64,000 nt of DNA. Origin: Phaeosaccion multiseriatum (taxonomy: Eukaryota; Protista; Ochrophyta, other classes). Numbering within the stretch: the stretch's first letter is position 1; the number at the start of each line of letters is the position of its first letter. The notes below the pieces were generated by a model that saw only the letters and a list, made by a program, of their open reading frames with translations, made no database searches and was not told the DNA's origin. This document shows positions 14,680-64,000 of this stretch, piece after piece. Where the stretch lies: positions 3,596,001 through 3,660,000 of the forward strand of contig OZ218956.1 in the NCBI GenBank assembly GCA_965112735.1, read 5' to 3'. The position numbers and the translations under genes were made by a program.

Positions 14680-15413
14680 CAACACGCGCTCCACACCACA
14701 ACCCTCCAACTTTTGACGCGTCACTGTTGGAGACATGTCTGCCGTTTCGCTCCTAGCCGCAGCTGAAGCAGCCTCCTCCGCCTTGGCTAAACAGGTAGCG
14801 AAACGATTGTCCAGGTCGCTGTTATAGGAGTAGTCTCCAAAGATGCCCTTCATATCTCGGGCCACACTCTGATCGTATCCTTGGGCGAATATCGTTCCGT
14901 TCGGAGCATATCCGTCCACATCAGGTCGGCCTCTTCCACGATGTCGGGGCATGCCTCACCCAGTGACCCATTCACACGCTTTCCCGCATTTTCTGTTGCC
15001 GCTAGATGCGGTTCTTATGCTCAGCTCCAGAGCCAAGACCCACTGGGCCTCCACATCCTCGACTTACAGAATCGTGTCTATGACAGAGCCGAAGTCCAGA
15101 GCCTCGAGCTTTGTGACAGCGCGTCCAGTCTTCTCGCTCCTCCAATCGCGCTTCCACTCATTGTCATATTGTGCACTCAGCAGGACGGCGCTCCAGCTTA
15201 TTTTCATTTCCCCCCCTCCCCCTACACACACACACACACACACCCACACACACTTTCACACTTTCAGTTTCTTAGGTGATTCCTATTAAGTCAATAAAGT
15301 TTCCCCCGTCACCTAAGAAACTGAAAGTGTGTGTGTGTGTGTGTGTGTGGGTGTGTGTGTGTGTGTGTGTGTGTGTAGGTGTCGCTGTGTCTCCGGGGCC
15401 CTCGAGGGGCCGG

Positions 15414-31194: not shown

Positions 31195-32442
31195 GAGGTA
31201 CTTCTCCGCATGGAAGTGTTTGACGTGACCGAGTCCGAAGCTTCTCCCGTCCTCATCAGCCTCAACGAGCAGAAGAAGATCATGACTGTGCAGGTACGAC
31301 CCAGCGAACTCTGCTGTCTTTTCTCTACTGCCTTTTCTACTTCTCTGCTGCTGTACTCTTCTCTGCTCTGGCCTCCGTTCTGTTAGTCTCCTCTCCTCTG
31401 CTCTGCTCCCTGCCGCTATATGCTCCTCTCCTTTGCCCCTTCTGCCCCGCTCTCCTCTGTCCCACATTACTCTGCTCTGCTTTACCCATGTTCCTCTCCT
31501 CTGCCATGCCCGTATTCCTCTTCTCTGCTCTGCGGCTAGCATGTGAGGGCCTAAGCGAAGGTCTTCGCAGGCCTCCCTCCCTCCTCTATAAGGCCTCTCC
31601 ATATGCCTCTAATCTCCCCCTCCTTCCCCCCCCCCCCCGCCCCCTCCCTACCCGGACCATACGCCACTTGATATCTCCTCCTCTTCTTCCTCCCCCTCCT
31701 CCTCCTCGTCCTCCTCCTCCTCCTCTTCTTCTTCTTCTTCTTCTTCTTCTTCTTCTTCTTCTTCTTCTTCTTCTTCTTCTTCTTCTTCTCTTCTTCTTCT
31801 TCTTCTTCTTCTTCTTCTTCTTCTTCTTCTTCTTCTTCTTCTTCTTCTTCTTCTTCTTCTTCTTCTTCTTCTTCCTCTTCCTCCTCCTCCACCACCACCA
31901 TCTCCTCCACCACCTTCTCCTCCTCCTCCCGGCCTTTGGTTGCCTTCTTTACGTCTCAGTACTACTTCTTCGCTGAGCCTATCTTCACCCACCCCGGCAA
32001 GTACCTTCTTCGCTTCTCTGCAGAAAGCAAAAAGTACCCCGACATCGCGGAGTATCGAGTCAGCGTCACTGTCTCGGACCACAAGGGGAATGTGCCCACC
32101 AGCAGGACACAGCAAGGGGTGGCAGCAGACGTTGGTGGGCGCCAGGCAAAGACGGAGGGGAAGAAGAAGGGGGCCTCCTCTGCCTCCTCCGACGAAACGC
32201 ATGTAACGCCTGGAACGTCGGCAGCAGCGCCCACCACGACGAGCAAGAAGCGGAAGCGGGACCGGGGTGGCGAGGAGGAGAGAAGGAAGCAAAAGGAAGG
32301 TGGTGACGTGGCGGGGACAGGAGATGCCAGCGAGGAGGCCGAGGCTGCGACACACGACGCGCCTATGGTAGCAGGAGCAGCAGGAGCAGAGGCAGGGCCG
32401 TCGACAGGGAAGAAGAGGAGAGGTCGTCCGCCCACTGCGAAG

Positions 32443-32474
<32 letters not shown>

Positions 32475-34134
32475 GGACCAGGAGGAGGAGGAGGAGGAGA
32501 AGGAGAAGGAGGAGGAGGGCCACACTCCGACACCGACACAACCGAAGACGCCCAAAACGCCTTATGTGAAGAACAGCCACAAGAAGGGGATGAGTCACAA
32601 GAAGAAAGTTCCCGGCCCTAGTCACAAGAAGAAAGTTCCTGCCCCTGTCGTGGAGGGCGCGATGGACAAATTCGTCCTCAAGAGGTCAGGGGCACGCAGC
32701 GAAGCGGAGGAGCAAGGGGTAGGGACTGCTGCGGCGGCGGCGGCGGCTGCTGCTGCTGCTGGTGGTGGTGGTGCTGGTGGATCTGAGGGTATGTCTACTC
32801 CGGCGGGTGGGAGAGGAGGCGCCGGCGGGAGGAAGGCAAAGCGGGGAAGCAGCGCTTTGGCTTCGGACATGGTTGAGGGCTCTGCAGTCGTGCCTCCGAG
32901 TCCGGCTAAGAGGAGCCACAAGAAGAAGCAGCCGGAGCAGTTGGTCGTACAGCCGAAGAGGAGCCACAAGAAGAAGCAGCCGGAGCAGTTGGTCGTACAG
33001 CCGAAGAAGAGCCACAAGAAGAAGCAGCCGGAGCAGTTGGTCGTACAGCCGAAGAAGAGCCACAAGAAGAAGGTCCGCCCCGCGGAGGAGGAGGTGTACG
33101 TGGACGTGAACGAGAAGAAGGAAGAAGAAGAAGGAGGAGGGGGAAGGAGGAAGCGCAAGAGGGGGGGAGACGACGAGGAGAAGGCAAACTCAAACTTAGT
33201 AGCGGGTGCAGGGAACGGGGGCGGAAGCGCCAGTGCTGCTGATGCTTCTGCATCTGCTGCCGTTGTCACCGGCGGGCGAGGGCGGGATAGCGGGAGGCGT
33301 GGTCGAGCCGCAGCTGCAGCAGCAGCAGTAATAGTAGAGACGGAGGGGGTGGGCGGAGCAGGTGCAAGCCCATTAAAGACGCCCAAGGCAAGATCCCACA
33401 AAGCGGGTGCCGGTCGGAGCGCCGCTCGGAGTCGGAGCAACGTGAAGGAGGAGTCGGTGGTGGTGCCGGTGTACGAACCTCCCTCCACTACGGTTATCCT
33501 TTCCTCGGCGGGCGAGTACCGGGTGACTCTCTCCCCCTCTCTCATGAGCACTCTGCTGCGGGACTGGGAGGCAGTGACCAAGGAGGGGTTGCTTGTGAAC
33601 CTGCCTCGTACGGAGAACCACACGGTGCGGGACATTCTCGTGGCGTTTCAGAAAACGCTGCAGTCCAAGGACTCCACAGGGAGAAGGGCCATCGACCTCC
33701 TCCTCGCCTCCTTCGATGGGCTGCTGGGACACGCACTTCTCTACCAGGAGGAGAAGGCGCAATTCAAGCAACTTGTGACCAGGCACCCTCACTCTTTGCC
33801 CAGCGACCTGTACGGCCCCGAACACTTGGTCCGACTGCTTATGGCCCTCCCTCGTCTGCTGCTGCCCATTCAGCAAGTCAAGGCCTCATTGAAGGCAGCA
33901 TCCGTGCAGGCCGCTTTACAGGAGGGGCGGAGCGGTGTCTCCTCGGCCTCGGGGGGTGGGGGCAAGCTTCCGGCCACTTGCACGGGTACGTATGGAGCCA
34001 AATTGGCGGCCGTGGTGGACAAGTTGGTGCTCTATCTGACCAACAGACCGGAGCTGCTGGAGCACCACTTCAGCAAGGGAGGTGCAGCCCCTGTTGCGGG
34101 GGGGGGGGGCACAAGCAGCAGGCGCGCGAGGTAG
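31195..34134 (+). CDS. MRG-domain chromatin protein (Eaf3/MRG15-like C-terminus); 5' exons uncertain (possibly from ~30640)
   Basis: LLRDWEAVT..LVNLP..TVRDIL..F..LLG.ALLY.EE..Q..PSDLYGPEHLVRL matches the MRG domain. Lys-rich repeats lie upstream. Confidence 0.85.
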
Positions 34135-37655: not shown

Positions 37656-37970
37656 GCGGGTCCGCCCCGTTCCTTCTATCTTCTCCTCCCTCTTCTTTCT
37701 CGTGTTCTCTCCTGCCTTTGCTGCTAGCACGATTGCACTTTCCGCGTCCCCCCCTAGCGTATGGCGAGCTCAATGGCAAAGATTTGCTGCACTCTGCTCT
37801 TTTTCGTTTGGCTCTGCAAAGAGCTACACGTTGTGTCATGTCGTCGCGCTCGAGCAACGTTCCACAGATTCGTATGCCCAACACGGGAAGCAGCTCCCAC
37901 CTCATGATCGATCACATCAATCTCGCTCTCCCCTGTTGCTGCTAACTTGCGCGGTGTGTACGCCGAGAAG

Positions 37971-39476
37971 ATGGCGGCTTTAGATATGGTGGGCGTCCCA
38001 ATCATCTCTCGGGTCATCTCTCAGAGCCTCATGCTGGACATGGACGGCGTGCTGGCCGAGGTTGCTGGCTCCTACCGCATGTCCATCATCCAGACGGCCG
38101 CCCACTGGGGAGTGACCGTCACGGAGGAGGATATCTCCAAGGCCAAGATGGCGGGGAACTCCAACAACGACTGGGTCCTTACGCAGAGACTGCTGCAAGA
38201 GGCCGGGCAACAAGTGAGTCTGGACAAGGTGACGGCCAAGTTCGAGGAGATTTATCAGGGCACTGCGGGCACCCCGGGGTTGTGCGAGCTGGAGACGCTC
38301 ATCCCCGCCAAGGGCGTGCTGGAGGAGCTGCTGCGGCGCCTCCCTAAGGGCATGGCCATCGTGACGGGGCGGCCACGCAAGGACTGCCACAAGTTCCTGG
38401 AGACGCACGGCATCTCCCACCTCTTTGCGGCATGCGTGTGCATGGAAGACGGACCGCCCAAGCCCGACCCCTTTGCGGTGGTCCGGGCGGCGGAGCTGCT
38501 GGGAGTGGACCCCGAGGACGCCGTCTTGGTGGGGGACACGCCCGACGATATTGTTGCAGCCGTGGCGGCAGGGGGGAGGGGGGTTGGCGTGCTGACGGTT
38601 CCCGATCAAGCCAAGGCCTGGCTCGACCCCAATCGAAAGAACGGCTTGGTGGAGGCGATGGTCCAGGCGGGGGCGATGGCAATTTACCCTCCGGGCTTGG
38701 CGCAGCTGCTGGACCTTGTGCCCCCCGTTAGCGTGTCTGAGCTTCCGAATGGCAAGGCCAAGGCCAAGGCCAGTTCAGGCCCTCCTGGCGTTGCTGCTGC
38801 TATCGTAGGGGGGGTTGGAAATGGAGGTGGAAGCGGAAATCCACCCCCCCCCCCCGGATCGTCATCATCATCATCATCGAGCTTCTTGGGCAAGAGGACT
38901 GCCCACATAGAGCGTGTCACCAAAGAGACGTCCATTGCCGTTGACATTGACCTGGACGGGGGAGGAGACGCCGACATCTCCACAGGGCTGGGTTTCCTCG
39001 ACCACATGTTTCACGCCCTGGCCAAACACAGTCGCATGAACATCTCCCTCAAGTGCAAAGGAGACCTCCACATCGACGACCACCACACCTCCGAAGACTG
39101 TGCTTTGGCGCTGGGTGAGGCCTTCGACAAGGCACTGGGGGATCGCAAAGGCATCCGACGCTTCGGCACGGCACTCGTTCCTTTGGACGAAGCCCTCAGC
39201 AGGGCCGTTGTGGACATCTCCTCGCGGCCGCACTCGGAGGTGGACCTGTGTCTCAAGAGGGACATGGTGGGCACCATCAGCAGCGAGATGCTCGTGCACG
39301 TGTTGGAATCGTTTGCTCAGGCGGCAAGGCTCACCCTGCATGTCGATGTGCTTCGAGGCTCCAACGACCACCACAAGTCGGAGAGCGCCTTCAAGGCAAC
39401 GGCAGTGGCCATTCGCACTGCCATTTCGGCCGATGAAACGGCGGGTGTGCCCTCCACCAAGGGAGTTCTCGCCTAG
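37971..39476 (+). CDS. hisB: Bifunctional HAD phosphatase / imidazoleglycerol-phosphate dehydratase (HisB-like), intronless
   Basis: HAD motifs [27 protein letters not shown] motifs [43 protein letters not shown]. Confidence 0.95.
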
Positions 39477-48031: not shown

Positions 48032-48679
48032 ATGGCACAAACACAGGATGCAGCAGCGTCAGCCCCCGCGGTAGAGCAGCAGGGCCAGAAGCCGGACGAG
48101 CAGCCGGACTCGCAGCGTGGGAAGCAGCAGCAGGAGAAGGTCGCCGACAAGGAGGGCAATAAGAAGGAGATACTCGAGAAAGAGAAGGAGGAGCGAGCAG
48201 AGCGCAAGCGCCTGGAAGCAGAGCTGCGGCGCCTGGCGGAGAAGCGCAAGGCCGCGCACAACGATCTGGTGGAGACTGAGACGAAGATCTACAAGCTGGA
48301 GACCAGCTACCTGGACGAGACGCGGCTGTACGGCAATGTCATTCGCGGGTGGGATGAGTACTTGTCCAACAGAGGCATGCAGGCCCTGGCAGCAAGCGCG
48401 GAGGGGAGCAGGCGACGCGCCGCCACCAGGGTTGACGGCGGAGAGCGCTTGTTTAGCCTGAGCAGTTCCACGAGCCCGGCTACCAAGGCGCTGGAGCAGC
48501 ACAGCGGGGGGCGCAAGAGGGACAGCACGGGGGTCGTGAAGGGGGAGGCCGGGTCAGCCCAGCAGGAGGGCGGCGGCAAGTTGAAGGAGGACAAGCCTTC
48601 CTCCACCACCACCCCCAGTGGCAGCGGCGGTAGCAGTAGCAGGGCGGTCAGCAGCGAGAGCAAGAGGCGGCGGCGCTGA
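48032..48679 (+). CDS. EAF6: Chromatin modification protein Eaf6/MEAF6 (NuA4 subunit)
   Basis: L.ETETKIYKLETSYLDET..YGNVIRGWDEYL...ERLFSLSS.TS is the Eaf6 signature. Confidence 0.92.
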   Translation: MAQTQDAAASAPAVEQQGQKPDEQPDSQRGKQQQEKVADKEGNKKEILEKEKEERAERKRLEAELRRLAEKRKAAHNDLVETETKIYKLETSYLDETRLYGNVIRGWDEYLSNRGMQALAASAEGSRRRAATRVDGGERLFSLSSSTSPATKALEQHSGGRKRDSTGVVKGEAGSAQQEGGGKLKEDKPSSTTTPSGSGGSSSRAVSSESKRRRR

Positions 48680-48983
48680 TGGGACTCTGACAGCAGCAGC
48701 AGTTGGTGGTACAGCACGGCGAGCGAGGGCTGTCACTGCACGCACCCTCGGAGGTCGGAGTAGGAAGTGGTGACGTGAGCGGCACACTCGCAATGGCTGC
48801 ACAGAGATGGCCGCTGCTTCGCTCTTGTCTTGATTGTCTGTCCTTTGCCTTCACTTTTGCAGTAAATGGTACCCTCCCATGGAAGAAATAATACACCCTT
48901 TAGAGCATTTCCTTCCTTCAGTCTGCGCGCGTCCTAGTGATAGTAGGAGCGGGAAGGAAGGATCAAAGGAGCCTCCCCCTTCT

Positions 48984-49019
48984 TCTCAAAGCCTTTCTTT
49001 GAGTCAGTGGTGCTGTGGG
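48984..49019 (+). repeat. 36-bp direct repeat copy 1 (copy 2 at 56528-56563), with internal CTCAAA/TTTGAG hairpin
   Basis: tctcaaagccttt[c/a]tttgagtcagtggtgctgtggg, 35/36 identical between copies. Confidence 0.9.
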
Positions 49020-49581
49020 AGGGGGGGTTGATCGGGTTGGTGCACCAACTCTTTTTTTTTTGTTTTTTTTTTTTTCCAACTTTTCTTCAATCACCTCTCA
49101 GCACCCCCTCCGCAGTCAATACCACGGTCCCCAAGCCGGAAGGGATAAAGAAAAGGAAGGGAAAGACTCATCCCCGACACGGGGACAATTGTTCTTGGCT
49201 GGGGAAGGCCTTTATATTATTTTGTTCAGCGGAGCGGAGGGGCCGGCCGGAGAACTGCCTACGCCGCCTCCCAGCAGTGCGGAAGGCACCACTAGAGCTT
49301 GAGTCGCCAGTATGAGCAGCACTACAAGTCAAGCGGAACGAGGAGGCAGGCGCGCAGCAGGAGGAATGGCTCGCCCCCTTTCCTAGGCCTAGTAGGAGGT
49401 GTTGGCTGGGAGGGGAGCGCTGCCCCCAGCATCTCCAGCACCGCCGGCGGAGCCGCAGCAGCAGCTAGACCAACAGCAGGAGCAGCAGCAAGGCCAACAG
49501 GAGGAGGAGGAGGGGGGGGGGGGGGGAGGGTTACGACGACGTGCGGCTGCCGTGTAATGCTCAAGGGCGGCTCCTCTTCAA

Positions 49582-50217
49582 GTCAAGAACGTGGATAACA
49601 CATGCAGGGACGAGCCGCCTTTGAGCATCACGCCTCAGCCGCACGTCGTCGTAACCCCATGATGAGCGCGGAGACGACCACGGATGGCCCACACGAGGAG
49701 CGGAAGGGACCATGTTGCACGAGATGGCTGAGGTCATGGCCTCGGCGGTTAAGAAGCTTCGTTCCGCCCCCCCTGCGATGAGCGTTGTTGTTGGTGAAGC
49801 GGACGACGAGGCGGCGAAGCTGGGGACGTTCCTGGACCTGCTGAGGGGCGGAAAGTTCCAACTGGGACATCATGAAGACGCCTATGAAATGCTCAATTTC
49901 ATCCTGGAGCACCTCGAACATCATCACCCTGACCTGAAATCGCTGCTCCGGTGGAACTTCGGGTGCAGCATGCAAGTGAAATTCTCCCAAAAGTGCAGTT
50001 CTCCTTCCTGCTGGCCTGGTGGTGGCTCCTCGAGCCACACAGCAGCCGCTGAGGACCTCACGGGGCCTCTGGCACTCCCGACTTGTGAGGTGAGTGTTTA
50101 GCTACATGTCAACCAGCCCACTCCCAACTCCCTCACACGCACACGCAAATACTAGATCCGCCTCGCTTATGCATGCCGTCAAGCATGGCTGTAGCTAATT
50201 GCCTGTTCCACCCTCAC

Positions 50218-50274
<57 letters not shown>

Positions 50275-51678
50275 GGCGAAGAGCATTGATGGGCATGTTC
50301 CTACGCGGAGAGGCGTCGCGAGAGGGCGTGGAGTGCGACGAGTGCCGTGGAAGGGGTCCCGAGACTGAGACGGAAGCAAGGATTCATTTCGTCGGTCCCC
50401 CCGTTCATTTGCTCATTAGTGGTATCTGTACCGTCGTCGAACCAAGGCTTGAAGCCTCCGACGAGGTCGCCACTGCTGGCCAGGAGGGGGAGCGATTGAC
50501 TCGCAGCATCTCTCACAGTCATCAGCAGAACGGAAGAGCAGCGGTGGAAGGACGCGGGCAAGCGAGCCTCCATCCGTCTTTTCCCTTTGGGGCGAAGGAC
50601 TTAGCCGGCGCGCAGCGGACTCTCAACGGAGCTCATGACATGGGGAAGAGGATGACGGGGGGTCCTGCTTCACATGATGCGGAGGAGGAGGAGGAGGAGG
50701 AGGAGGAGAAGGAGGAGAAGGAGGAGGAGGAGGAGGAGGAGGAGGAGGAGGAGGAGGAGGAGGAGGAGGAGGAGGAGGAGGAGGAGAAGGAGGAGGAGGA
50801 GAAGAAGAAGAAGAAGAAAAAGAAGAAGAAGAAGAAGAAGGCCATAGAAAGGAAAGCACGGGCTGAGGGCACCGCACGAATGCTGATGGGCAATATAAAG
50901 CCACATGCGCAGGTCCAGAAGGAGCGGGTGGTCAAGAATGAGAAGCTTGGCCGCCCAGCGTGGGAGAGCAGAGTGCGTGTGTAGGACGACGACGCCTTCT
51001 TTAGGAGGATGCTGGCCCCGCTCTTCGCCCACGACAAGGAGTTTATGGGCCGAGAGGACAAAGCGGTGGGGGAGTTGAAGGAGCTTCTCGAGTCCGCATC
51101 CGAGGAGGACATCCCATGGGTAACACTTTTCGGATCAGCGTCGGCGAAGGGGCCAGGGAAGAAGGAGGAGAAGTTCCACCGCGACTTTGCCGGGAAGTTG
51201 TACGCCCCCGCTCATCTCGGGACGGTACCAGCGCTGCAAGCTGGTAAGTCTCCAGTACAGAAGGGGTCAAAACCACAACTTGCAGCGCCTTGCAGCTGAG
51301 CTACAGCTGTGTGTGTGTGTGTGAGTGAGTGAGTGAGAGTGAGTGAGTGAGAGTGAGTGAGTGCGTGCGTGCGTAAGTGAGTGAGCGCGTGCGTGCGTGA
51401 GTGAGCGAGGGAGTGAGTTTGTGTGTGAGTGTTGGCGTGCGTGAGTGAGTGCGTGCGTGCGTGAGGGAGTGAGGTAGTGAGTTTCTGTGTGAGTCAGTGG
51501 ATGAGTGAGTGAGAGTGCGTGCGTGAGTGCGTGAGTGCGTTAGTGCGTGCGTGAGTGAGCGAGGGAGTGAGTTTGTGTGTGAGTGCGTGCGTGAGTGAGT
51601 GAGGGGTTCTTTCCTTGCTCCTCCAAAAGCTCATTGTCTGTCTTCCCTTCTTGTCTCCATCCCGACCCATCTGTCCCG

Positions 51679-51711
<33 letters not shown>

Positions 51712-54700
51712 GAGGGGCTCAGAGAGTTGGTGGCGCTGCACCTTGCGCAAAAACGCGCCACATTGCGCAAAGCGAAAGCCGCCTGCAACGCCACATCCGC
51801 TGCCATCTCCTCGTCACTCCTTTCGGAGTCTGCATCATACTCAGTGGTAGGCACTATGAGCTGCACAAGATCTCGGCCGAGTTTCTCTGCGTCACCCTTC
51901 ACCCTTTGTCCTGCTTTCCAGTCCTCCATCTTCTTGACCTGGGCGGCAACATCGGCGAGCAAGGTCCTTGTATCGGGCAGCTTTGCTCCTCCCTGCTTGT
52001 CGCGACGCTCAACACGCCCGACTGCGCCACGCGTGCTCGTATAGTGCTCTGTCAAGGACACAACAATCTCGGCTTGCGCAAGGTGCAGCGCCACCAACTC
52101 ACTGAGCCCCCCTTGCACCTGTGCGTGCGTGTGTGAGTGAGTGTATGAGTGAGAGTGCGTGCGTGAGTGAGTGAGGGGTTCTTTCCTTGCTTCTCCAAAA
52201 GCTCATTGTCTGTCTTCCCTTCTTGTCTCCATCCCGACCCATCTGTCCCGCACACACACACACAGGTGCAACAGGGGCTCAGTGAGTTGGGCACCTTGCG
52301 CAAGCCGAGATTGTTGTGTCCTTGACGGAGCACTATACGCGCACGCGTGGCGCAGTCGGGCCTGTTGAGCGTCGCGGGAAGCAGGGAGGAGCAAAGCTGC
52401 CCGCTACAAGGACCTTGCTCGCCGATGTTGCCGCCCAGGTGAAGAAGATGGAGGACTGGAAAGCAGGGCAAAGGATGAGGGGTGACGCAGAGAAACTTGG
52501 CCAAGATCTTGTGCAGCTCAGAGTGCCTACCGCTGAGTATGGTGCAGACTCCGGAAGGAGTGACAACAAGGAGATTGCAGCTGCGGAGGTGGCGTTGCAG
52601 GCGGCTTTCGCTGCGGGTGCCTACGTTGAGGCTTCCAGCAGAAGGATGGACAGGTCCACCTGGGTCGCAGCGGTGGCCTCTGAGGCAGCTGCCTATCGTC
52701 TAAACCGCCACCACCCCAGCGCCGAGGATAGGAAACTGGCCATGGGCATGGGGCGGTTGCTGGCAAAAAAGCTCGCGAGAGCTGATTCCAATCTTTTCAG
52801 CCCCTTCTCGAACGTGGAGACGACGACACGACGGAGGGCGAGATCGAGAGGCGGGGGGCGAGGGACCAGTGGCTCAGAGTAGCAGAAGCTGTGATGCAAC
52901 TAGTAGAACCCCAGCAGCACGTGGACAAGGCGGTGTATCTCGTGACACTCTACCAGGTGCAGGACAGGAGAGCTCAAGGCTGACGATGAGAAGCTTTCTC
53001 GCCTGGTGCTTGAGACCCTTGCACACACAGATCCGAGCGGGCCGAGCGGACCATCCCCCGAGCGGACAGCGTTTCGTTGGGCTGCCCTTTATCAGCACTT
53101 GTGGCAGACGTACGGCCTTCCAAGGATCACGAAGCGGAGGCTGCGCGGCGTGTCCGAGCCAGCCGACCTTGTCAAGGCGGCGAAGGAGATGGTGGACAAG
53201 GAGGGAGAGGAGAGGGGCGAGAAGGCAGCAGAGAAAGCAGCCGTAGCAGCGGCAACAGCGGCCTTGAGGCACGGACCCAAGTCTTTGGCGTACGAGGTGG
53301 GTGCTCAGCAGACGAACAGCGGACTGGTGCGCTGCACCTGTGCAGGAGGTGCAGGTGCAGCGCACCAGTCCGCTGTTCGTCTGCTGAGCACCCACCTCGT
53401 ACGCCAAAGACTTGGGTCCGTGCCTCAAGGCCGCTCTTGCCGCTCCTGCCGCTGCTTTCTCTGCCTCCTTCTTCTCCTTCTCACTCCTCTCCTCTCCCTC
53501 CTTGTCCACCATCTTCCTCGCATCCTCGACAAGGTCGGCGGGCTTCGGCATGCGTTTCAGCTTCCACTTCGTGATCCTTGGAAGGCCGTACTTCTGCCGC
53601 AAGTGCTGATAAAGGGCAGCCCAAAGAAACGCTGTCCGCTCGGGGGATTGTCCGCTCGGCCCGCTCGGTTCTGTGTGTGCAAGGGTCTCAAGCACCAGGC
53701 GAGAAAGATACTCATCGTCAGCCTTGAGCTTTCCCGTCCTGTACCACACCTGGTAGAGTGTCACAAGAAACAACGCCTTGAACACGGGCTGCTGGGGCCG
53801 ACTCTCGTGTTGTCGCATCGCATCTTCTGCTTTTCTGAGCCACCCCGCCCGCTCCTTCATGTCGCCCTCCGTCGTCTCCACGTTCGAGAAGGGGCTGAAA
53901 AGATGGGAATCAGCTCTCGCGAGCTTTTGTGCCAGCAACCGCCCCATGCCCATGGCCAGTTTCCTATCCTCGGCGCTGGCTGGGCTGGTGGCGGTTTAGA
54001 CGATAGGCAGCTGCCCCAGAGGCCACCGCTGCGACCCAGGTTGACCTGTCCATGCTTCTGCTGGAAGCTTCAACGTAGGCACCCGCAGCGAAAGCCGCCT
54101 GCAACGCCACCTCCGCAGCTGCAGCTGCAATCTCCTTGTCACTCTTGTCGGAGTCTGCACCATACTCAGTTGTAGGCACCATGTTGTCCTAGAGAATTTG
54201 CGACGCCGACCGGACGAGAGCGAAGGCGTATAGTGGTGGGCACTCCAAGTGGCGCGCTCTACGAAAAGACGAGCTTCCTCGCAAGGCCGGGTTGGGGCCG
54301 AATACAAAGTACGTGGAGGTGCTTGATACCATAGAGGGCTTGGACGATGATGCCAATCTACTACGACGCGACTACTTGGGAAAACTCACTCCCGGTCAGT
54401 GCTGGGGCGGTACGGATCCGGGGGTACGCTCATTCCTCCACATCTAGCTACCATATGGGCAACAATTGTGTGTATCGGGTTGGGCACAAGTTCTCTGCGA
54501 AAGTGCGGAAGGTGCAGAAGAGAATCGCCCACCTGGACGGGGCGATACACGTGGCGAGAGAGGTAAGCAAGCAGCTAGTAGCGGGAAGTTGACTAGCTAC
54601 CAAAGGCAAGGCAGGGGAAAACTGGCAGCTCACTCGCTCCGCTCAGCCATGGAAGGATGCATCCCCTCCGCCCCTCCTCTCTTGCCCCTACCCTTGACTT

Positions 54701-55455
54701 GTTCCCTGGCTGCTGACTGACTCGGGCGCTCCCGCCCTCCTCTCTCTCTCCCTTCTTCGCTTCCCTTCTCGCCTTTGCTAGAACGGAGACACTGACACCG
54801 CCAAGATGCGCGAGCGTTTGAAGCACGAAACTTTTGTGCTGCACACAATCGCAATCAGGCTCATTACAGCGACATTTACCCCCCGGGGGGGGGGGGGGGC
54901 AAGCGTGGGCGAGCCGGAAAGGCTGCTTGAGAGCGGGTCTGCCCAGGGACATGGGAAAGGTCATGGCGGCTCTCTCCTTCGGACTACTTCGACAGCGGCT
55001 TCGATTGGTGAGTGCTGGGCAGCCAGGGGAGGAGCAGTAGCCGGATGCTTCATCGGGGAGCCCAAAACAAGCAAGAAGGAGGCGACTGCCCTCCGCCTTG
55101 CCTCTTACTACTTGCTTCTCCTTTGCCTCTGCCTCCTCTCGCTCGTCCTCCTCCCTCACCAGGCGGGATCGTCTCCATCGTGCCCTCTGACCACCCTCTG
55201 CGAGCCCAGCCAGCGAAGCCTACACCACCAAAACGTGTGGCGCTTGCGGGGCGTACAACGGGGCTGTCGGGGGCAAGAAGCAGTGGGTTTGCCCCACTTG
55301 TCACCAGATGCTACTCCGCGACCCCTCAGCCGCCCGGACCATCACCCTGTTGGGGTTGCAGGAGTTCGCAACAAGGGGGCGCCTCCCATCCTCGTCCGTG
55401 CGTGCTCAAGCCACAAGTGAAGAAGGCACGGACACAGCAAACCTTCCCAGTAAGT
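49582..55455 (+). pseudogene. Rearranged pseudogene: USP (peptidase C19)-like remnants, shared central region and Fanzor2-like RuvC/zinc ribbon
   Basis: USP-like VKNVDNTC (49582-49605), HEDAYEMLNFILEHL and CDEC..PVHLLI. Central IPWVTLFGS and VQEGLRELVAL match the minus paralog. RuvC motifs GTDPGVR (D at 54415), EAYTTKTC..C..C..C and LLRDPSAARTI. Lesions include stops at 50982 and 54445, frameshifts at ~51205, ~54448, ~54890 and 55207-55214, and internal inversions. Confidence 0.85.
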
Positions 55456-56008
55456 CGCTCGCATGCCTACCTGCCTGCCTGCTCGCTCGGCCGTGCCTCG
55501 CTCCGCTTGTTCTTGTTTACGTCTGCAACCAAGCAAGTGCCGACATTCACATTCGCTTAGCTAAGCTTTTCTTCACTTGTTCTTGCCTCTGCCGCTTTTT
55601 TTGATTTGCTTTCTTGACTTGCCCTGCCTCGCTGCCTCGCCCCCCCCCCCGGCCCCTGGCTGCCTGCCTGCCTGGCCTCCGCCCTCTCGCTCGTCCTGCT
55701 GTTGCTTTGCTAGTCGGGGCCACTGGCCGGGGGAGCAGCGGGCGAGGCTGCGCCGAGTCTCCTAGGAGACAAGGAGCAGTCGCCAGAGGCTGTACAGACT
55801 ACGGTCCGACTGCTCCTTGTGGAGCACACAAGGAGCAGTCGGATCGTAGGCTGTACAGCCTCTTGCAACTGCTCCTTGTCTCGGGGAGCAGTCGGACCGT
55901 AGTATATAGGTGAGTCATAGCTAAAATGCGTTTGCGTTGCTTGCTGCTGCCTGCTGCTCCCCTCCGTCCCCAGCCACGCCAAAGTCAGAAAATTTTACCC
56001 CCAACTTT

Positions 56009-56158
56009 TCCTCTTTCCTAACCTGCCCCTGTCCCCGCCCGCCCCCCCCCCGCCCCTCCGCCCCTCCGCCCCTGCCCTCCGTCTTTTTGGCTTTTTGGCG
56101 ATTGCTTCCCTCCTCCCGCTCCCGCCTTTGCCAAAAAATTCAAATTTTTTTTTCTCCT
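56009..56158 (+). other. Conserved non-coding 3' element downstream of plus-strand Fanzor (candidate omegaRNA scaffold or element end)
   Basis: Colinear with the reverse complement of 56853-56988: tcctctttcct(a/g)acct.cccct.tccccgcccgcccc...ccctccgcccctgccctccg...ggcgatt...cccgcctttgccaaaaaatt. Confidence 0.55.
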
Positions 56159-56527
56159 TCAGCGTTGACATGCAAAACAAAAAGCACACAAAGCAGGCAG
56201 CAGCAGCAGCAACCAGGAGGCGGCTTGCGATCATTGCATCATGGGATCGATACTGGTTATGATCTAATGAACTGAACTACCGCCGCGTCAGCCGGCCTTG
56301 ACCTGCACCGGCCGACCGGCCGGCCGGCCAACCGTCAGCTGCCACCTGTTAGCTTCCAGGCCAAGGGCAGTGACGACCCTTCCCGGAACAGCTCTCAGCA
56401 GCCACCTAGTGGCCTACCGCTCACTCCAAGTTCTCTAAGATGAAAGAGGAAAGGAAGCTGGATCTGACTGAAATAGACCTCCTCGATATCCAATGTCGAT
56501 GTCCTGCCCATACACTTACACACCTCA

Positions 56528-56563
56528 TCTCAAAGCCTTTATTTGAGTCAGTGGTGCTGTGGG
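56528..56563 (+). repeat. 36-bp direct repeat copy 2
   Basis: Matches 48984-49019 with one mismatch. Confidence 0.9.
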
Positions 56564-56852
56564 CTGGTGCTGGGACTCTGTCGTCTCCTTGCCTTGTCCT
56601 CCCCCACCGTCTTCTCCTCCTCCCCCTCCCCTTTTTTCTTTACGACACTGTTATTGAGAAATTCGTCTGACAGTCTCAACCCCTGATGCACTATCCGCTA
56701 TCCGCTATCGCCGGGGCCAGCCGATCCGCTATCCGCTATCGGATAGCGGGGGGGGGCGATAGCGCACATATAAGTTTTTGATGGCACTTAAGGGTGTAAT
56801 CAAAGCTCTATAAAGCGGCGCATTTTTATACCGTCGACCGCCGGCCCGGAAA

Positions 56853-56988
56853 AGGGAGAAGAAAAAGAAATTTGGAATTTTTTGGCAAAGGCGGGAAGAG
56901 CAAAATCGCCGACGAGGCAGGCAATCGGAGGGCAGGGGCGGAGGGCAGAGGGGCGGGCGGGGAGAGGGGAAGGTCAGGAAAGAGGAGA
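56853..56988 (-). other. Conserved non-coding 3' element downstream of minus-strand Fanzor (candidate omegaRNA scaffold or element end)
   Basis: Homologous to 56009-56158 and in the same orientation relative to its own Fanzor gene. Confidence 0.55.
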
Positions 56989-57365
56989 AGACAAAGGCAT
57001 AGATGGCGATGGCGGGAACAAGGAGGCGAGCAGAGGTTAGGACAGGAAGGCGCGCGAGTGCAAGCAACCGCAACGAAGTTATCTCCGCCCACTCACCTAC
57101 AACGATTGTTGTACAGTCTCAGCCCGGCAGGGCTGAGCCCGGGAGGGCTGAGCCCTGCAGGGCTGACTGCTTCCCCGGCTTGACGCCCCAGCTGTTGTTG
57201 ATTCGTTGCCCGCCCGAGCACATGATGATGAGTGAGGACAAGTAAGCAAGCCAGGGAAACTCAGGGGCTGTTTCTTGTTCAGGCAGCAAGCAAGCAAGTA
57301 GGCAACACCAATGGCTGGACAGGCAGATGAGCGAGACGCAGGCAGGGGCGCAATCAGCAACTTAC

Positions 57366-58541
57366 TGGGAAGATGTTGTGGGTGGCGTGGCCTTGGAGTT
57401 GGCCATGCCTTTGAGAAGTCGTACAGCCCGAACAGAGTGATTGTTCGGGCCGCACAAGGGTCGCGCAACAGCGTGGCCTTGCAGGTGGGGCAAGTCCACA
57501 CCTTCTTGGCCCCCACGCACTCGTTGAATGCACCACAGGCGGTGCATGTCTTGGTGGTGAAGGCCTCGCTGGGCTCACGCAGCACTAGTGAGCAGGAGGG
57601 AGAGGCGATGGCCTGAGCGAGAGGAGTTCGGGCAGCCAAAGAAGGAAGTCAATGAGAGGAATTGTTAGCTCAGCCACACGAGGGTTGCTGATGGGGACGG
57701 AGGTGTCTCAGTCTCAGCGACACCAGCCAGCCAGCCAGCCCAACACCAAGCCAACAACAAGCAACAGACGCACACACGCACCGTCTTGAGCCGTTGGCGG
57801 AATAGACCCATGGAGAGGGCGTCCATGTCCCTCCCCATATCCCTCGGCAGCCCCGAGATCTGGCGGCCCCGCCGGCTGGACCATGCCTGGGCTCGGACAG
57901 GAGGCAACACAAAGTGCGTGAAGTTCGCCACGATGAGCCGTATGGCTATCGTGTGGAGGACGAGCGTCTTGTGGTGCAAGAGCGCCCGCATCTTGGCCGC
58001 CTCCAGGCGAAGAGCCCGCGTGTCCTGTCCACTCTGTGCGCGGGCGGAGGGAGGGAGGGAGGGATTAGAAAGTGACATCAGCCACGACAAGAGACTTGGG
58101 CGAGGCACGCATCCTCCTCACCTGCGCTGCCTGCCACACCTGGCTCTCCAGCTTCGCTATCCTCCTCTGCAGCGGCCGCATGGAGGCGGAGAAGCCGTGA
58201 CCCACCCTGAAGAAGCGCCCAGTGTGGGCACACCAGATGGACAGGAACGTCCGCACTCCGGGGTCGGCCCCTCCCCATCTTTGCTCGGGGGTTAGGCCCG
58301 CAAGACACTCCCTGACCTCGCGCCGGAACTCCAGCGTCTGCCCCTCCAGGGGATTCAGCACATCCACGTACTTGGTGTTGGCGTGGAGGCCAGAGCGCGG
58401 ACGAAGGTCCTCCACACGGAGACCGCGCCACTTTCTGTCCTGGCCATGCTCTCCTGCCATGGCTCGGTCCAGCTTCCTGATCTTGGCGTCCACGCCCGAC
58501 AGCTCCTTCTTCTTCTTGCGGCGGCTCCGCCATTCCTTGAC
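57366..58541 (-). CDS. Fanzor2/TnpB-like RuvC-zinc ribbon module (exons 58541-58122, 58033-57782, 57612-~57366)
   Basis: RuvC-I WGGADPGVRTF (D 58265), FVLPP at the canonical-Glu position, LSMGLFRQRL, relocated Glu EAFTTKTC (E 57567), CTACG..WTCPTC zinc ribbon and RuvC-III LRDPCAARTI (D 57462). Both internal introns are phase-0 GT-AG. Confidence 0.93.
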
Positions 58542-58683
58542 CTGATGTCGGCCAAGAGGGGAAACAAGCCACAAGCCAAAGGAGTTCTTTGAGATGACAA
58601 GGTGTCAAGGTACTACTGCTGCTGCTGCTCCTGCTGCTGCTACTACTGCTGCTACTACTGTTGCTGCTCTGCAGCTATTCCTG

Positions 58684-58734
<51 letters not shown>

Positions 58735-61700
58735 TTAAGAGTACTTACCCCGAGTTGCTGCAGGTCTCGACGAAGTAGCTTGGCTCTATAACGCAACTCT
58801 ACCAACTCCTCCATCCGGCCCGCGTCGTCAGCCCCTTCCTCCCTCCCTCCCTCGCTCCCTCGCCCCCTCCCTCCCTCGCTCCCTCCCTCCCTCCCTCCCT
58901 CGCTCCCTCGCCCCCTCCCTCCCTCGCTCCCTCGCTCCCTCCCTCCCTCGCTCCCTCGCTCCCTCCCTCTCTTCCTCCCTCTCTCCCTCCCTCCCTCCCT
59001 CCCTCCCTCCCTCCCTCTCTTCCTCCCTCTCTCCCTCCCTCCCTTCCTCCCTCCCTCCCTCTCTCCCTCTCTCTCTCCCTCCCTCGCTCCCTCGCTCCCT
59101 CCCTCGCTCCCTCCCTCGCTCCCCCCCTCCCCCACCCCTCCCTCCCCCCCTCTCCCACCCCCACCCGCTCCCCCAGGCCTCTCACGGCGGAGCTTGCAGT
59201 AATGCTCCAACTCCTCCTTCTCCCCCCTCTCCCCCCCATGCACTTCCATGTGCGGAACAGCTCGTTGGGGTTCCTCAAACTGGAGATGGAGCGATGTACC
59301 ATGGGCGCAGTCGCCAAGCACGGGGCCCGTCACGCAAAGCCACGCTGGCTGCACCGACGTCGTCCCATCCGCCCGGTGGGCTGGCTCCCGCCAAAGGCGC
59401 CGCGAGGGCTTCCCTGTCTGGTCGAACAGGGTCAGAGTGTGCCCCGCCGTGACGCACACGGTCACCCTCTCGATCCATCGGGCTCCGTTATTGACGAGGA
59501 TGGCTTCACCCCCTCCCACCCCATCTTTCCGGTACTCCAGCCCAAACTCGCCCGGGTTGAGGTGCCCACAACACCCTGCCTTGAAGTATTCGGTGCTCTG
59601 CACCTGCCTCTCCCCACGCTCCGCTGCGCGGCGCTCCCCACGGAATCGCCCAACCCCAACGTGTGTCTGCATCGCGTCGATCTGCCTGTCAACGGATGGG
59701 GTGAGAAAGCGCCTCGACGGAGGCCGGAGACAACGCTGTGTGATGGACTTGTGGTCAAGGTCCACACCCGCCACAGCCACGGTAAAGATCGCCACCGCGG
59801 CCTCTCCCATGGACGTGTCTCTGCCGTACACGCGGTTGCTCAGTCTCCTCATCGCCTTGACGGAGCCAGGTTGGGTGAGGACAAGAGCGGCAAGGCGGGC
59901 ATCAAACACCGGGCCGGTTGTAAGCCCCTGCCAACTGTCCTGCCTGGCAAGGGCGGCGCGTGCGCCCTCAACCTTATCCTGCTCCTGAGCCTCCTGCTGC
60001 TGAGCCTCCTGCTCCTGAGCCTCCTGCTGCTGAGCCTCCTGCTGCTGAGCCTCCTGCTGCTGAGCCTCCTGCTGCTGAGCCTCCTGCCCTTCATCGGACT
60101 CTACCGTGCCGAAGCACTTGTTCACGTGCTCGTCGGCAGTGGTGCGCACCTCCTCCACCTCCTTCCCCTTCCTCGCTGCTATGAAACCAGCGGTTACTGC
60201 AGCGTCCAGCAGAAGGTTCTTCAGCTCATCCCCCTGGTATCCCGCTGATCTGGCATACTCTGCGGCCCCACAGACCGCAAGCAACTGCTGGCAACCCACA
60301 CGTTGATCTGAGTCCCGCGTGCCGCACACTGCCTCGAAAGCCTCCACAGCGAGAATGGCAATCTCTTCCGCGACAGGTCGTCGTCGGACGACGCTGAGCT
60401 TCTTGACCTGTGCCTTGACATCCCCGAGAAGAGTCAAAGGACTTGGGAGCTGCCGTCCAGCCTGCCGTCCTCGGAACTCCTCTGCCGTGGTGGGCCCTTC
60501 CTTGGAGCCGGCGTATTTGTACGTGAGGGACGGCACAAACTCGGCTCTCGACATGTAGAGGGCCAACTCATCTAGAAAGCCCTTTTGCATCTGAGAAGAG
60601 GGGCAGGCAAAGGCGTGTGAGTTGGCAGCGTCAGATGCAGCAGGTACAAGAAGAGCGTGGCACACATGTTGGAATTCGGACCATCGTCGACATTTGGAGG
60701 GGGGTATTCCATTGTAGGCCTCATCCGTCCCTGGTGATATACAAGAGCGTGGGCTCCCTCTCTCCTCCCTTTCCCCTCCCCTCCCACTCAGCCACTCACC
60801 AGCACGCAGCGTCCTCGTCTCCCTTGCGTGATGAAGGAGTAAAGATTGGCCGCAAAAGCTACATGAGCCTGCTCGCGGATAGGGGGCGGTCGTCCCCTTG
60901 TCTCCGACCCCCCGCTCCCGTAGACGGTCATCCAGGGAATCTTCTCCGCCTTTGCAGACTGCAGCAGCAACTTGGCCTCCTCCACCGCCGCCTCCTCATG
61001 CCCTCGATACCTCTCCTGTAACAGGAGCGGCGCCATGAGGCTCCTCAGCTGCGTGTCAAGGCTATCGTCGGTATGCCACGAAAGAGAGGCCGTCCACCCA
61101 CCCCCCCCCCTTCCCCCTAGCTGCTTCGCCACCCGCGCCCTCTTGGCACTGACATCAGCGCTTGTTTGCGAGCTTCCCCCGCGCATCCTCGCCGTGTCCT
61201 CCTTCCTCTCCTGCCACCCCTCTTCCTCCTCCCGCTTCTTCTTGGCCTGGCGGTTTTTCTTCTTCTCAGCCTTGGAGGGAGGCCTGGGCAAGCGCTCCTT
61301 CTCATGGCCCTTCACCCCCTGCGCCGCCCAAAGCTTGAGCTCGCCTTGGCATGCCTCACTTGTCGCGCCAAGCTTCACCAACAGCCCCAAGCACGCGTCA
61401 AACCTGTCCTTCGCGTCCCCGTAGGTCTGTGGTGACTCCAGGCTACACTTGCGGGGCAGACCCTCCAACTCGTCATTGCGCCAGAGCCCCAAGAGTGCTT
61501 CAAGTCTCTTAGCCCCGGCCAGAAAGGAGGCGCGGTTGGAGCTGCCCCCCGATTTGACCATTGACACAATGAGGTAGGGATCCATCCGCATCAACTGCTT
61601 GATCAACGTGAAGACTTGCTGCGCCTCCTCAGCCGAGTCCTCAGCCGTGAATGAGATTTCATTCCCCACGCCCCACCACGGCTCGAGCTTAGCACTAAAG

Positions 61701-61741
61701 TGCCCCCAGAGTTTGCACAGCTCCGACCAGCAGCTGCCGCC

Positions 61742-61790
<49 letters not shown>

Positions 61791-63992
61791 GGCTCCTTGG
61801 CCCTCCCTTGAGCATCAAAAACCTCCCCCTGGATGGTGGTGTCCTCTCGGTGTTGTAGCATCCCCTTGTCCAGGAGGAAGCGAGGAACGCACGCGACCAG
61901 ATCCTTCAGCAAAGCCATGTCGTTGAAGGCACTCTGTGCCACCCCTCGACTCGCAGCTCCTCCCCTCAGCACACTCAACAGCGCTGGCTGCTGCTGGACA
62001 ATCACAGATATTGTACTTCTGCTCTTCTTCTCCTTCGCCTTTCCACCTGTCTTCCTCTTTGCTGCCGCTTCCTTCTTCCTCTTTGCTGCTGCAGCAGCTG
62101 CCGCTTCCTCCTTCCTCTTGTTCTCCTCGGCCATCCGCATAGGGGCAAGCCGAGCGTTTCGCAACACTGTGGCGCCGGCCTCACCATCATCATCCCCTGT
62201 CGGGAGGAAACTATACATGTTGGAGCGGAATTGCTGCATCACCCGCCGATTCTGCTGCGCCGCCCTCTCGCGCCTTCGTAGCTTGTTCTTCTGCCTGTCC
62301 TCCCTCACTTGCGTTGATGCCATAATGGCATCATTCCGCTCCACACCAGCCCCCGAGACACGGTCGCTAGGGAAGGGCACATTCAACTTGAGGCGCTGGC
62401 CGTAGTGCTTCCATTTCTCGGGCTTCTCCGCCGTCAGGACGACCGGCTTGAAGCCCGAGACTTCGGCACCATCGCGACACAGGGGCATCGACTCCTTCGC
62501 CCAGGCACTGGCACACACTTCTGGAAACTGCATCCCCTCCCGAAGAGTCAACACGTCTTTCCCAACAGCCAACATCGACACCTTCCCTTTGCCCCCCTTG
62601 CAGTCCTCGCGAGCCGCGCAAGCCCGGCGATGCGCCGCGAGCTGCATAGGTCTCCTAGTCTGGCGCAAATAACGCCATGGGTCGGCGGCAAGCTTGAGGA
62701 GGAGGCACCGAAGCAGCAGGTCTTGCTTGTCTCCCTCCGCCGTCGGCTCCACCAGGACAATAAGAGTGGTGTTATGCCACGTTCGCCAGTGACCTTGACC
62801 CCCCGCGAAAGTGGCTAACACGTGCTTGTTCTCGAGCACCTTGACCCTCCTCAAGCGCGGAAGCAGGTTGGAGCAGAAGAGGCTATCCTCTTTGACCTGA
62901 CCATGCCAAGCGAGAAGAAGGTTGAAGAAAAGGTAAGGGGTGGATTCTGCATCGGCTCCGTCGTGTCTGCCTGCCTGCCCATATGCCTGCCTGCCTGCCC
63001 ATATGCCTGCCTGCCTGCCTCCCTCTCTGCCTGCCCATATGCCTCTCTGCCTGCCTGCCCATATGCCTGCCCATATGCCTGCCTGCCTGCCTGCCTGCCT
63101 GCCTGCCCATATGCCCCTGTTCCAGCCGTGCCCTTCGCTCAAATCAAATGCTCACCTCAAGGCCAGCGTTCGTGAGGATGCTCCTCCCCCCCCCCCTGAC
63201 AGGCCTGGAGTCGCCAATGTAGATGATGTTGCAGTTGAGTTTTCCTTCACTCTTCCACGTTGCCAGTTCTTGGGCACACCCGATGCAGGGGAGCGTCGAA
63301 ACGACCAGTACCACCTCATCAGTAGGAGTCCAGCCGGACCGCTTCCCGATGCACTCCAGCAGCTCCGTCTCTGCATGAGCGCCCACTGTAACTCCATGGA
63401 GACAGCTGGACACATCAGCTCTGGCCGGTCCACTCCGTCTTGCCACAAGCCACTCCTCTCTGGTGACGTTGTAGGCCCCCGCTGCTATGGCACTGTGGTT
63501 CTGCCCCGGTTCCTTCGCCTTCACAGCCTCAGAATACACACGCCTGGACAGATCCACCACACCGTCCTTCCACGGAACCTTCTCATCCAGCACCGTCGGA
63601 CGCAGTTCCCGCCCCCCGCCCTCCTCCTGCTGCTGCTCCTGCTGCTGCTGCTGCTGCTGCTCCTGCTGCTGCTGCTGCTGCTGCTCCTGCTGCTGCTCAG
63701 GCGCGGACACGTCAGGCCTCGAAAGCAGCGTCGGCCCCCCGCGCTTCTTGCTCTTGTTCTTCTCTCTCTGCTGCTGCTGCTGCTGCTGCGGCTGCTGCTC
63801 CTGAGGCGGGGGTAGGTCGGCCGCACACCAGGCATCCACAGCGCTGTTGGGCACCACGAGCACCTCGAACAGCAGATTGTTGTGCCTGCCTCTCATAAGG
63901 GCAATGCACTTGCGCTTGTCTGTATCCACCCCCCCGCCCAGGCCCTCCCAGAGGGCGTCGGCCATCTCCTTGCCCTCCTCCTCACCGAGCAT
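57366..63992 (-). CDS. Proposed giant deaminase-Fanzor fusion gene (about 1,900 aa or more, at least 6 exons, may extend past window end)
   Basis: Exons 63992-63156, 62896-60800, 60590-58749, 58541-58122, 58033-57782 and 57612-~57366 join through phase-0 GT-AG introns with no stop. Exon 1 holds HAE-x26-PCIGC. Confidence 0.7.
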
Positions 63993-64000
63993 GGTGAACG

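Follow-up and report, generated by a model that had tools for sequence, protein, structure and literature searches.

Can a Fanzor-type RNA-guided nuclease exchange the enzyme that stands in front of its core? The question is raised by a stretch of 64,000 nucleotides from the alga Phaeosaccion multiseriatum (GenBank assembly GCA_965112735.1, contig OZ218956.1, positions 3,596,001 to 3,660,000 of the forward strand), here called the window and numbered from its first letter. This window holds two diverged copies of a TnpB/Fanzor-type gene in tail-to-tail orientation. An earlier note on the same DNA had described a common core preceded by a deaminase in one copy and by motifs of a USP-type cysteine peptidase in the other. 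With moderate confidence we read the locus as two old insertions or paralogues: copy 2 would encode one deaminase-Fanzor protein, copy 1 would be a dead relic that once had a USP-type front, and the linker between front part and core would be modular. Described Fanzors are stand-alone nucleases with disordered N-termini that bear a nuclear localization signal (NLS), and the copies examined here differ from them. Such a paralogue pair, with one core and two unrelated N-terminal pieces of enzyme type, would be the first comparative hint of a swap site.

Two diverged copies share a core and its introns

The window has a GC content of about 60% and its introns are packed with microsatellites. All minus-strand reading frames of copy 2 were compared with the window by tblastn. 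Five collinear protein blocks with 34-70% identity were detected in the two copies, followed by a conserved non-coding element.

Copy 1, about 49560-55390, plus strand: TnpB/Fanzor-like unit
Copy 2, about 57390 to the window edge (64000), minus strand: TnpB/Fanzor-like unit
Block A (IPW motif), 61195-60836(-) in copy 2 and 50871-51206(+) in copy 1: 34% identity, E 4e-8
Block B (LP..TLL.DV.AQVKK), 60596-60396(-) and 52292-52450(+): 46% identity
Block C (KWR.LR..NTKYV.VL..WGG.DPGVR), 58466-58236(-) and 54223-54444(+), continued at 58211-58113 and 54473-54571: 45-50% identity
Block D, 58003-57779(-) and 54794-55010(+): 60-69% identity
Block E (zinc ribbon and LLRD), 57570-57412(-) and 55212-55370(+): 70% identity
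Conserved 3' non-coding element, 56005-56158(+) behind copy 1 and 56990-56857(-) behind copy 2: 73.5% identity over 155 nt, E 3e-19

The order of the blocks is the one that the earlier note had reported, and its statement that the copies also have intron positions in common was confirmed. At least three introns (A/B, C/D and D/E) occupy the identical alignment column and have the same phase in both copies. They lie before [M/V]Q[K/Q]G in block B, after ...AAQ/...ARE in block C and after RL[KR][TL] in block D, with a GT donor and a CAG acceptor throughout. Block A reads MLAPLF...IPWVTLFGS in copy 1, and copy 2 carries IPWMTVYGS. One string quoted in the earlier note, LPDTRTLLADVAAQVKK, has to be replaced: it is a minus-strand reading of an inverted duplicate (52124-51927), and the forward copy at 52292-52450 begins LPATRTLL. 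No DNA-level similarity was found by blastn between the coding parts of the two copies, which marks the copies as old.

Similarity between the copies starts at TARM, directly past a K/E-rich stretch in each. Upstream of this linker they are unrelated, with a deaminase and an orphan region in copy 2 and a USP-like piece in copy 1. We infer that the common core, composed of a lysine-rich NLS-like linker, blocks A to E and the zinc ribbon, is an ordinary if large Fanzor (about 1,000-1,150 residues) with an NLS, in front of which unrelated pieces have been added. The copies would thus represent two old insertions or paralogues of a giant Fanzor family, tail to tail, each with a 3' element of about 150 nt.

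No Rfam family was detected in the window. The string CTTCCCAGTAAGT is kept in both copies about 50 nt past the zinc-ribbon exon (55420-55435 and 57375-57360), and a second common string, TAGGTGAGT, is found farther downstream. Both resemble splice donors, so that the genes may continue in further 3' exons, with part of the conserved 3' element possibly lying in an intron.

The core is of TnpB/Fanzor type

The Pfam profile PF07282 (Cas12f1-like_TNB) scored 30.3 bits, against a cut-off of 26.3, on the copy 2 frame 57097-57639(-). The last coding exon of copy 2 matched PDB chains of UnCas12m4a, of the mimivirus TnpB-like protein L79 (Fanzor2), of LaTranC and of ISDra2 TnpB, and for both copies the best local NCBIfam matches were IS607_TnpB (E 2.7e-6 and 5.8e-5) together with guided_TnpB. 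Fanzor and TnpB proteins are characterized by the motif D-X(125,275)-[TS][TS]-X-X-C4 zinc finger-X(5,50)-RD (Bao and Jurka 2013, PMC3627910). This motif is present in the spliced model of copy 2, with the aspartate (GGADPGV) at about residue 1687, TTKTC at 1836, CxxC...CxxC and then LLRD at 1866-1869. The motif residues of copy 1 are the same, but its frames are broken. Together, these matches support the assignment of both predicted products to the TnpB/Fanzor type.

The canonical RuvC-II position is without glutamate, reading VLPPV in copy 2 and VLPGV in a relative from Chrysoparadoxa. An alternative catalytic glutamate close to the zinc ribbon has been shown experimentally (PMC10530073). 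Here, the glutamate of SEAFTTKTC aligns with residue E467 of mimivirus Fanzor2 L79 (chain 9b0l), and the glutamate of SEAFTT is invariant in the alignment of four family members. Most likely, then, the family is a TnpB-like one of IS607/Fanzor2-like type with a rearranged RuvC-II glutamate, lineage-specific and giant. The nuclease triad (D, rearranged E, D) and the C4 zinc ribbon are in place in copy 2. Its core is apparently catalytically competent.

Copy 2 has a predicted zinc deaminase ahead of the core

The model of copy 2 comprises six exons and five introns. It has 1,989 codons and no internal stop; the splice sites were deduced from the sequence, and the protein length is a lower bound, the frame being open to the window edge.

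Exon 1 as seen, 63156-64000(-): zinc deaminase with HAE...PCIGC, donor GAG/GTGAGC, continuing past the window edge
Intron 1, 63155-62897(-), 259 nt: GTGAGC...polypyrimidine-CAG, phase 0, mostly (CAGG)n
Exon, 60800-62896(-), 699 codons: orphan part of about 545 residues, linker KKKNRQAKKKR, then block A
Intron 2, 60799-60591(-), 209 nt
Exon, 58749-60590(-): block B (LPSPLTLLGDVKAQVKK), beta-rich WED-like stretch, G/R/E low-complexity repeat
Intron 3, 58748-58542(-), 207 nt
Exon, 58122-58541(-): block C, including the RuvC-I aspartate (WGGADPGVR)
Intron 4, 58121-58034(-), 88 nt
Exon, 57782-58033(-): block D, with VLPPV at the canonical RuvC-II site
Intron 5, 57781-57613(-), 169 nt
Exon, 57388-57612(-): block E with SEAFTTKTC, C4 zinc ribbon and LLRD (RuvC-III)

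In all five introns the donor is GT[GA]AG or GTGCG and the acceptor polypyrimidine-CAG. A conserved GTAAGT follows the exon at 57388-57612, and an additional 3' exon past it is possible. Along the predicted protein, HAE (residue 208) and PCIGC (237) are followed by the orphan part, by the NLS-like KKKNRQAKKKR (826) and then by block A, block B, the WED-like stretch with the G/R/E repeat, RuvC-I, block D and the zinc ribbon with LLRD. The deaminase exon was joined to the core because the splice sites are phase-compatible and conform to the consensus. The most likely product of copy 2 is a single giant protein, 1,989 residues long or longer, with a deaminase and an orphan region on the N-terminal side of the nuclease core.

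The deaminase that the earlier note had placed upstream of the core in one copy was recognized by its motifs. HAETELL, a spacer of 24 residues and PCIGC (63377-63280, minus strand) provide the zinc and catalytic motifs of CDA enzymes at normal spacing. In a phmmer search of the PDB, the domain matched APOBEC3G catalytic domains (E 2e-4); the SNAD4, APOBEC_N, APOBEC2 and NAD1/2 profiles remained below threshold on this exon, and word searches for the domain returned no homologue. By motif, the deaminase of copy 2 is a predicted zinc enzyme of the CDA fold, with its nearest matches of AID/APOBEC type. The orphan part gave no Pfam or homologue match and no family in an ESM Atlas search with its 533-residue region; a homologue search with a 784-residue exon returned nothing, the search being swamped by low-complexity words. 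Of the two versions, with the N-terminal region read as modular at the linker, only the one with the deaminase is a candidate for function, and this intact copy is a concrete candidate for RNA-guided deamination.

Copy 1 carries the front half of a USP-like domain

The following features lie in or around the region ahead of the core of copy 1.

49558-50660(+): decayed USP-like front half, with Cys box, QQDA-box exon, (CA)n intron and CDEC...PPVHLLI piece
49588-49608(+): Cys-box motif KNVDNTC, in the loop of a 49-nt fold-back, followed by stops
49712-50089(+): QQDA-box exon of 126 residues, with GHHEDAYEMLNFILEHLE at 49862
50333-50420(+): CDEC...PPVHLLI piece, a CxxC-type motif
50199-50984(+): single open frame of 261 codons, in which the CDEC...HLLI piece is followed by a poly-E/poly-K linker and then by the beginning of block A
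48981-49019 and 56525-56563(+): 39-nt direct repeat with a 7-bp stem, 37 of 39 positions identical, sharply bounded

All three USP-like motifs announced by the earlier note were retrieved. They lie on one strand, in canonical order, with pattern matches at 49587, 49870 and 50333, and a six-frame translation of the whole window shows each of them a single time. When the exon at 49712-50089 was submitted to an ESM Atlas feature search, it matched UCH clusters (score 0.94, 174 of 256 features in common, recognition 2859), and its ten best matches all belonged to one family. On the same exon, Peptidase_C98 reached 14.2 bits against a cut-off of 27 (E 0.036), at matching profile positions. From these resemblances the stretch 49558-50660 is, in our judgement, quite probably derived from a USP.

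Its connection with the core is deduced from two observations: the open frame 50199-50984 spans both, and the 39-nt repeat encloses both. Between the two repeats lie the USP-like piece, copy 1 and its 3' element, and no match of this kind was obtained in 100 shuffles.

The earlier note had suggested that such cargo might serve in chromatin deubiquitination. A deubiquitinase at work is not supported by the sequence, which retains only the front half of a USP domain, has no His box and lies in a copy that is a pseudogene as a whole. The broader proposal of exchangeable cargo is partly supported, by the unrelated sequences ahead of a common linker; the working USP version that it would include was not found. 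The note's other proposal, a mobile element capturing fragments of host enzymes, suits the USP piece better, and capture or juxtaposition of a host fragment agrees with the broken half domain better than a deubiquitinase cargo does. Copy 1 would once have borne the front half of a USP-type cysteine peptidase at the same linker, most likely as a captured fragment of a host gene. Enzyme swapping ahead of a Fanzor core is, on the comparison of the two copies, plausible.

Copy 1 has decayed through fold-back duplications

Contrary to what would be expected of an intact gene, copy 1 carries a stop, frameshifts and fold-backs.

49528-49657: fold-back 1, 49-nt arms that are 88% complementary, 32-nt loop with the Cys-box motif
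50982-50984(+): in-frame TAG within block A, aligned inside the coding sequence of copy 2
51680-52612: fold-back 2, made of three pieces of block B: its forward start (51691-51765), an inverted copy (52133-51771) and the forward block (52251-52612)
52523-54179: fold-back 3, a 1.66-kb palindrome with 86% identity, centred at 53346
54195-55390(+): nuclease module of copy 1 (blocks C, D and E), with broken frames

The right arm of the 1.66-kb palindrome occupies the place of the core's distal WED-like part. Compared with both of its sister copies, the forward block B lacks 7 bp after 52290. In the nuclease module, one frameshift falls within the 28 nt between FLHI and YRVGH (54445-54472), the frame changes again at a G15 tract (54870-54884), and a 4-nt CAGC duplication lies near 55203, just ahead of SEAYTTKTC. 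Altogether, the lesions of copy 1 amount to one stop, three frameshifts or more and three fold-back inverted duplications, and part of its core is lost. On this sequence, copy 1 is a dead relic, unable to make either a nuclease or a deubiquitinase.

Four public sequencing runs hold the locus, all of them DNA from one sample, and were compared as short-read contigs. Both palindrome arms and the frameshift at 54445-54472 were recovered exactly. The contigs disagree on homopolymers, with C7 or C6 at 49761-49767 and G15 or G16/G17 at 54870-54884, and homopolymer errors in the assembly may mimic or hide frameshifts; the G17 version would restore the frame of copy 1 at the 54870-54884 site only. An origin of the palindrome as an assembly artefact was considered and rejected, its arms differing by 14% and each being recovered exactly in independent short-read contigs.

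At 51064-51068, three clustered base differences were seen in contigs at about twice the single-copy depth, which suggests that at least one further copy of block A, at least 95% identical, lies elsewhere in the genome. About 380 nt past the last coding block of copy 1, a 56-nt inverted repeat (55766-55882, 93% complementary, 5-nt loop) was found, and the corresponding position behind copy 2 showed nothing comparable.

Relatives of the family are few

Homologue searches were made in a collection that does not include the host alga's own proteins. An exhaustive HMMER search with the RuvC-I exon of copy 2 yielded three weak relatives only: two proteins of Chrysoparadoxa australica (CAM9771463.1 and CAM9952658.1) and one encoded on a metagenome scaffold, L001 (ENA ERZ28593328 scaffold_7986, 8.8 kb). 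Searches with blocks C and E as a locus returned nothing from viral contigs or JGI metagenome contigs. By these searches, the Fanzor family is rare.

The window copies share with L001 and the Chrysoparadoxa proteins the same Fanzor subfamily, the GGxDPG of RuvC-I, VLP in place of the canonical glutamate, and SEAFTT or LLRD. Upstream of their nuclease modules, the three relatives have no Pfam domain, deaminase motif or USP motif, and, unlike the window copies, which resemble each other in blocks A and B, they have no detectable similarity to either copy there; BLASTP of the middle exon of copy 2 against two of them gave no similarity upstream of RuvC-I. Like copy 2, L001 has about 6 kb of same-strand open reading frames (ORFs) ahead of its nuclease module, and it is by its sequence a second giant Fanzor, with a wholly different N-terminal region that could not be annotated. 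The Chrysoparadoxa copies, unlike copy 2, are apparently of ordinary size. Positions 3-8359 of L001 form a same-strand chain of ORFs of 466, 623, 480, 180 and 521 residues that ends in the Fanzor module of this subfamily.

Alternative explanations

Several results weigh against the reading proposed here, and they are set below beside the explanations that they would serve. The most serious alternative, which we regard as possible and yet clearly less probable, is that a host USP pseudogene, or a fragment of one, unrelated to the element, gave rise to the USP-like remnant: it would have been joined to copy 1 by fold-back rearrangement or by insertion of the element into a USP gene, and would never have been part of a Fanzor protein. 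The locus is indeed heavily rearranged, with three fold-backs, one of which holds the Cys-box motif in its loop. Moreover, the two parts meet in a (GAG)n/(AAG)n microsatellite that could promote illegitimate recombination, only half of a USP domain is present, and none of the collections searched yielded an intact USP-core copy. Downstream of the USP pieces, no frame of the window contains a His box, nor do the 85 residues past HLLISG. Two features are not readily accommodated by this explanation: the 261-codon frame that stays open from the CDEC...HLLI piece into block A, and the 39-nt direct repeat that encloses the USP piece and copy 1 together.

Only slightly less credible, though still unlikely, is a separation of the deaminase and the Fanzor core of copy 2 into neighbouring genes of one element or locus. 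The deaminase frame meets a TGA (63146-63144) three codons beyond the proposed donor, and with a stop of its own it could be a separate gene; methionines are available inside the next exon. The only public runs that hold the locus are DNA, and their contigs contain no splice joints. The giant upstream ORF chain of L001 is likewise devoid of a deaminase motif. Against this separation, the AG/GTGAGC donor and the acceptor, a polypyrimidine tract of about 40 nt followed by CAG, are in the same phase and in the style of the four downstream introns, and the (CAGG)n between them resembles the microsatellite-filled introns elsewhere in the gene. Two further results concern the deaminase itself: Pfam dCMP_cyt_deam_1 scored 22.2 bits on its exon, below the cut-off of 25, and an AlphaFold model computed without an alignment was unusable (pLDDT 35).

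It is improbable that the USP resemblance is due to chance, with 49560-50660 being a non-coding leader or decayed sequence without a specific source. Profile support is indeed sub-threshold: neither USP piece matched PF00443 (UCH), the best profile was Peptidase_C98 at E 0.036, PDB phmmer searches with both pieces were empty, and the second piece had low recognition and no family in the Atlas. Chance is nevertheless difficult to reconcile with the consistent UCH assignment of the QQDA-box exon in the Atlas search, or with three ordered motifs occurring once each where 300 composition-preserving shuffles gave expected counts of 0.02, 0.00 and 0.02, for regular expressions written after the sequence had been viewed.

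A further idea, compatible with our reading but doubtful, is that copy 1 has been kept because its fold-backs make a long hairpin RNA feeding RNA interference against the active family, as the maize Mu killer locus silences MuDR. Fanzor coding sequence makes up two sets of arms that could serve in such a hairpin, one of 301-350 nt (90%) and one of about 830 nt (86%), and a 49-nt pair lies at the USP motif. A divergence of 10-14% between the arms speaks against selection for perfect pairing, and fold-backs commonly arise from replication or repair errors.

Two limits bear on the core. The RuvC-I exon gave no PDB match, either singly or as a four-sequence profile, because it is too divergent, and RuvC-I was recognized by its GGxDPGxR motif and position alone. 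Furthermore, blocks A and B are undetectable in the distant relatives, so that the term core denotes similarity between the two window copies only. With these points weighed, we retain the reading of two old copies whose N-terminal regions would have been modular at the linker, copy 1 having later been broken by its stop, frameshifts and three fold-back inverted duplications.

Comparison with known systems

Like Fanzor2 and IS607-type TnpB (mimivirus ApmFz2, L79, PDB 9b0l), copy 2 has a C-terminal TNB zinc ribbon, [TS][TS]xxC4 followed by RD, and a RuvC-I aspartate; it has also lost the canonical RuvC-II glutamate and has a glutamate just ahead of the zinc ribbon instead. Introns and a basic NLS-like stretch are shared with eukaryotic Fanzors, which "often contain various domains" and carry N-terminal NLSs (PMC10530073). 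Copy 2 is larger than Fanzor2, which has about 400-1,000 codons: it has 1,989 or more, with some 825 extra N-terminal residues that include the deaminase. Its RuvC-I exon has also diverged beyond what PDB or Pfam searches can detect. Also in contrast to Fanzor2/IS607 elements, no TnpA and no inverted repeats were identified. A literature search found no natural Fanzor or TnpB fused to a deaminase or to a ubiquitin peptidase.

The order of parts in copy 2 recalls laboratory cytosine base editors (APOBEC with a Cas9 or Cas12 nickase), in which an AID/APOBEC-like deaminase lies N-terminal to an RNA-guided module. Unlike these editors, copy 2 is natural, its predicted nuclease triad is intact rather than that of a nickase or dead enzyme, and more than 1,400 residues separate deaminase and RuvC-I, in a fusion predicted from the sequence. 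We consider it unlikely at present that a stramenopile Fanzor lineage has repeatedly placed enzymes at one linker, with the deaminase version acting as one protein that delivers its enzyme to guide-specified DNA. If true, it would provide a natural counterpart of the base editor and a general layout for effector delivery.

Transposons are known to capture host fragments and protease domains, as in Pack-MULEs, in Helitron gene capture, and with ULP1 and OTU domains in MULEs and Helitrons. Copy 1 resembles such elements: part of an enzyme domain of host type, including an intron of its own, lies within a repeat-bounded unit and in frame with the element protein. It differs from them in that the carrier is of Fanzor type and the piece is USP-like, without its catalytic His box. 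The value of this dead copy would be mainly evolutionary, as an example of fold-back decay or possibly of hairpin-RNA formation.

Other features of the window

Ordinary host genes lie elsewhere in the window. They encode an MRG-domain protein (31936-34134) and a NuA4/EAF6 subunit (48032-48679), the latter ending about 300 nt ahead of the left 39-nt repeat. At 37947-39476 lies a single-exon HAD-IGPD histidine-pathway fusion gene, with 65% identity to its Chrysoparadoxa australica counterpart and 60-61% to the brown algal ones, which places the host among the ochrophyte stramenopiles. Three zinc fingers of WRKY19 type (PF24906, E 9e-38) are encoded in a 1,085-codon ORF at 1138-4395.

The remaining features are repeats. 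Units of 105 nt, about 80% identical to one another, form a long tandem array (27704-29760) inside a 952-codon minus-strand ORF (27353-30211). A 347-nt palindrome at 15971-16317 matches its own reverse complement at 96%, and a 175-nt tandem duplication (14339-14683) is located near it.

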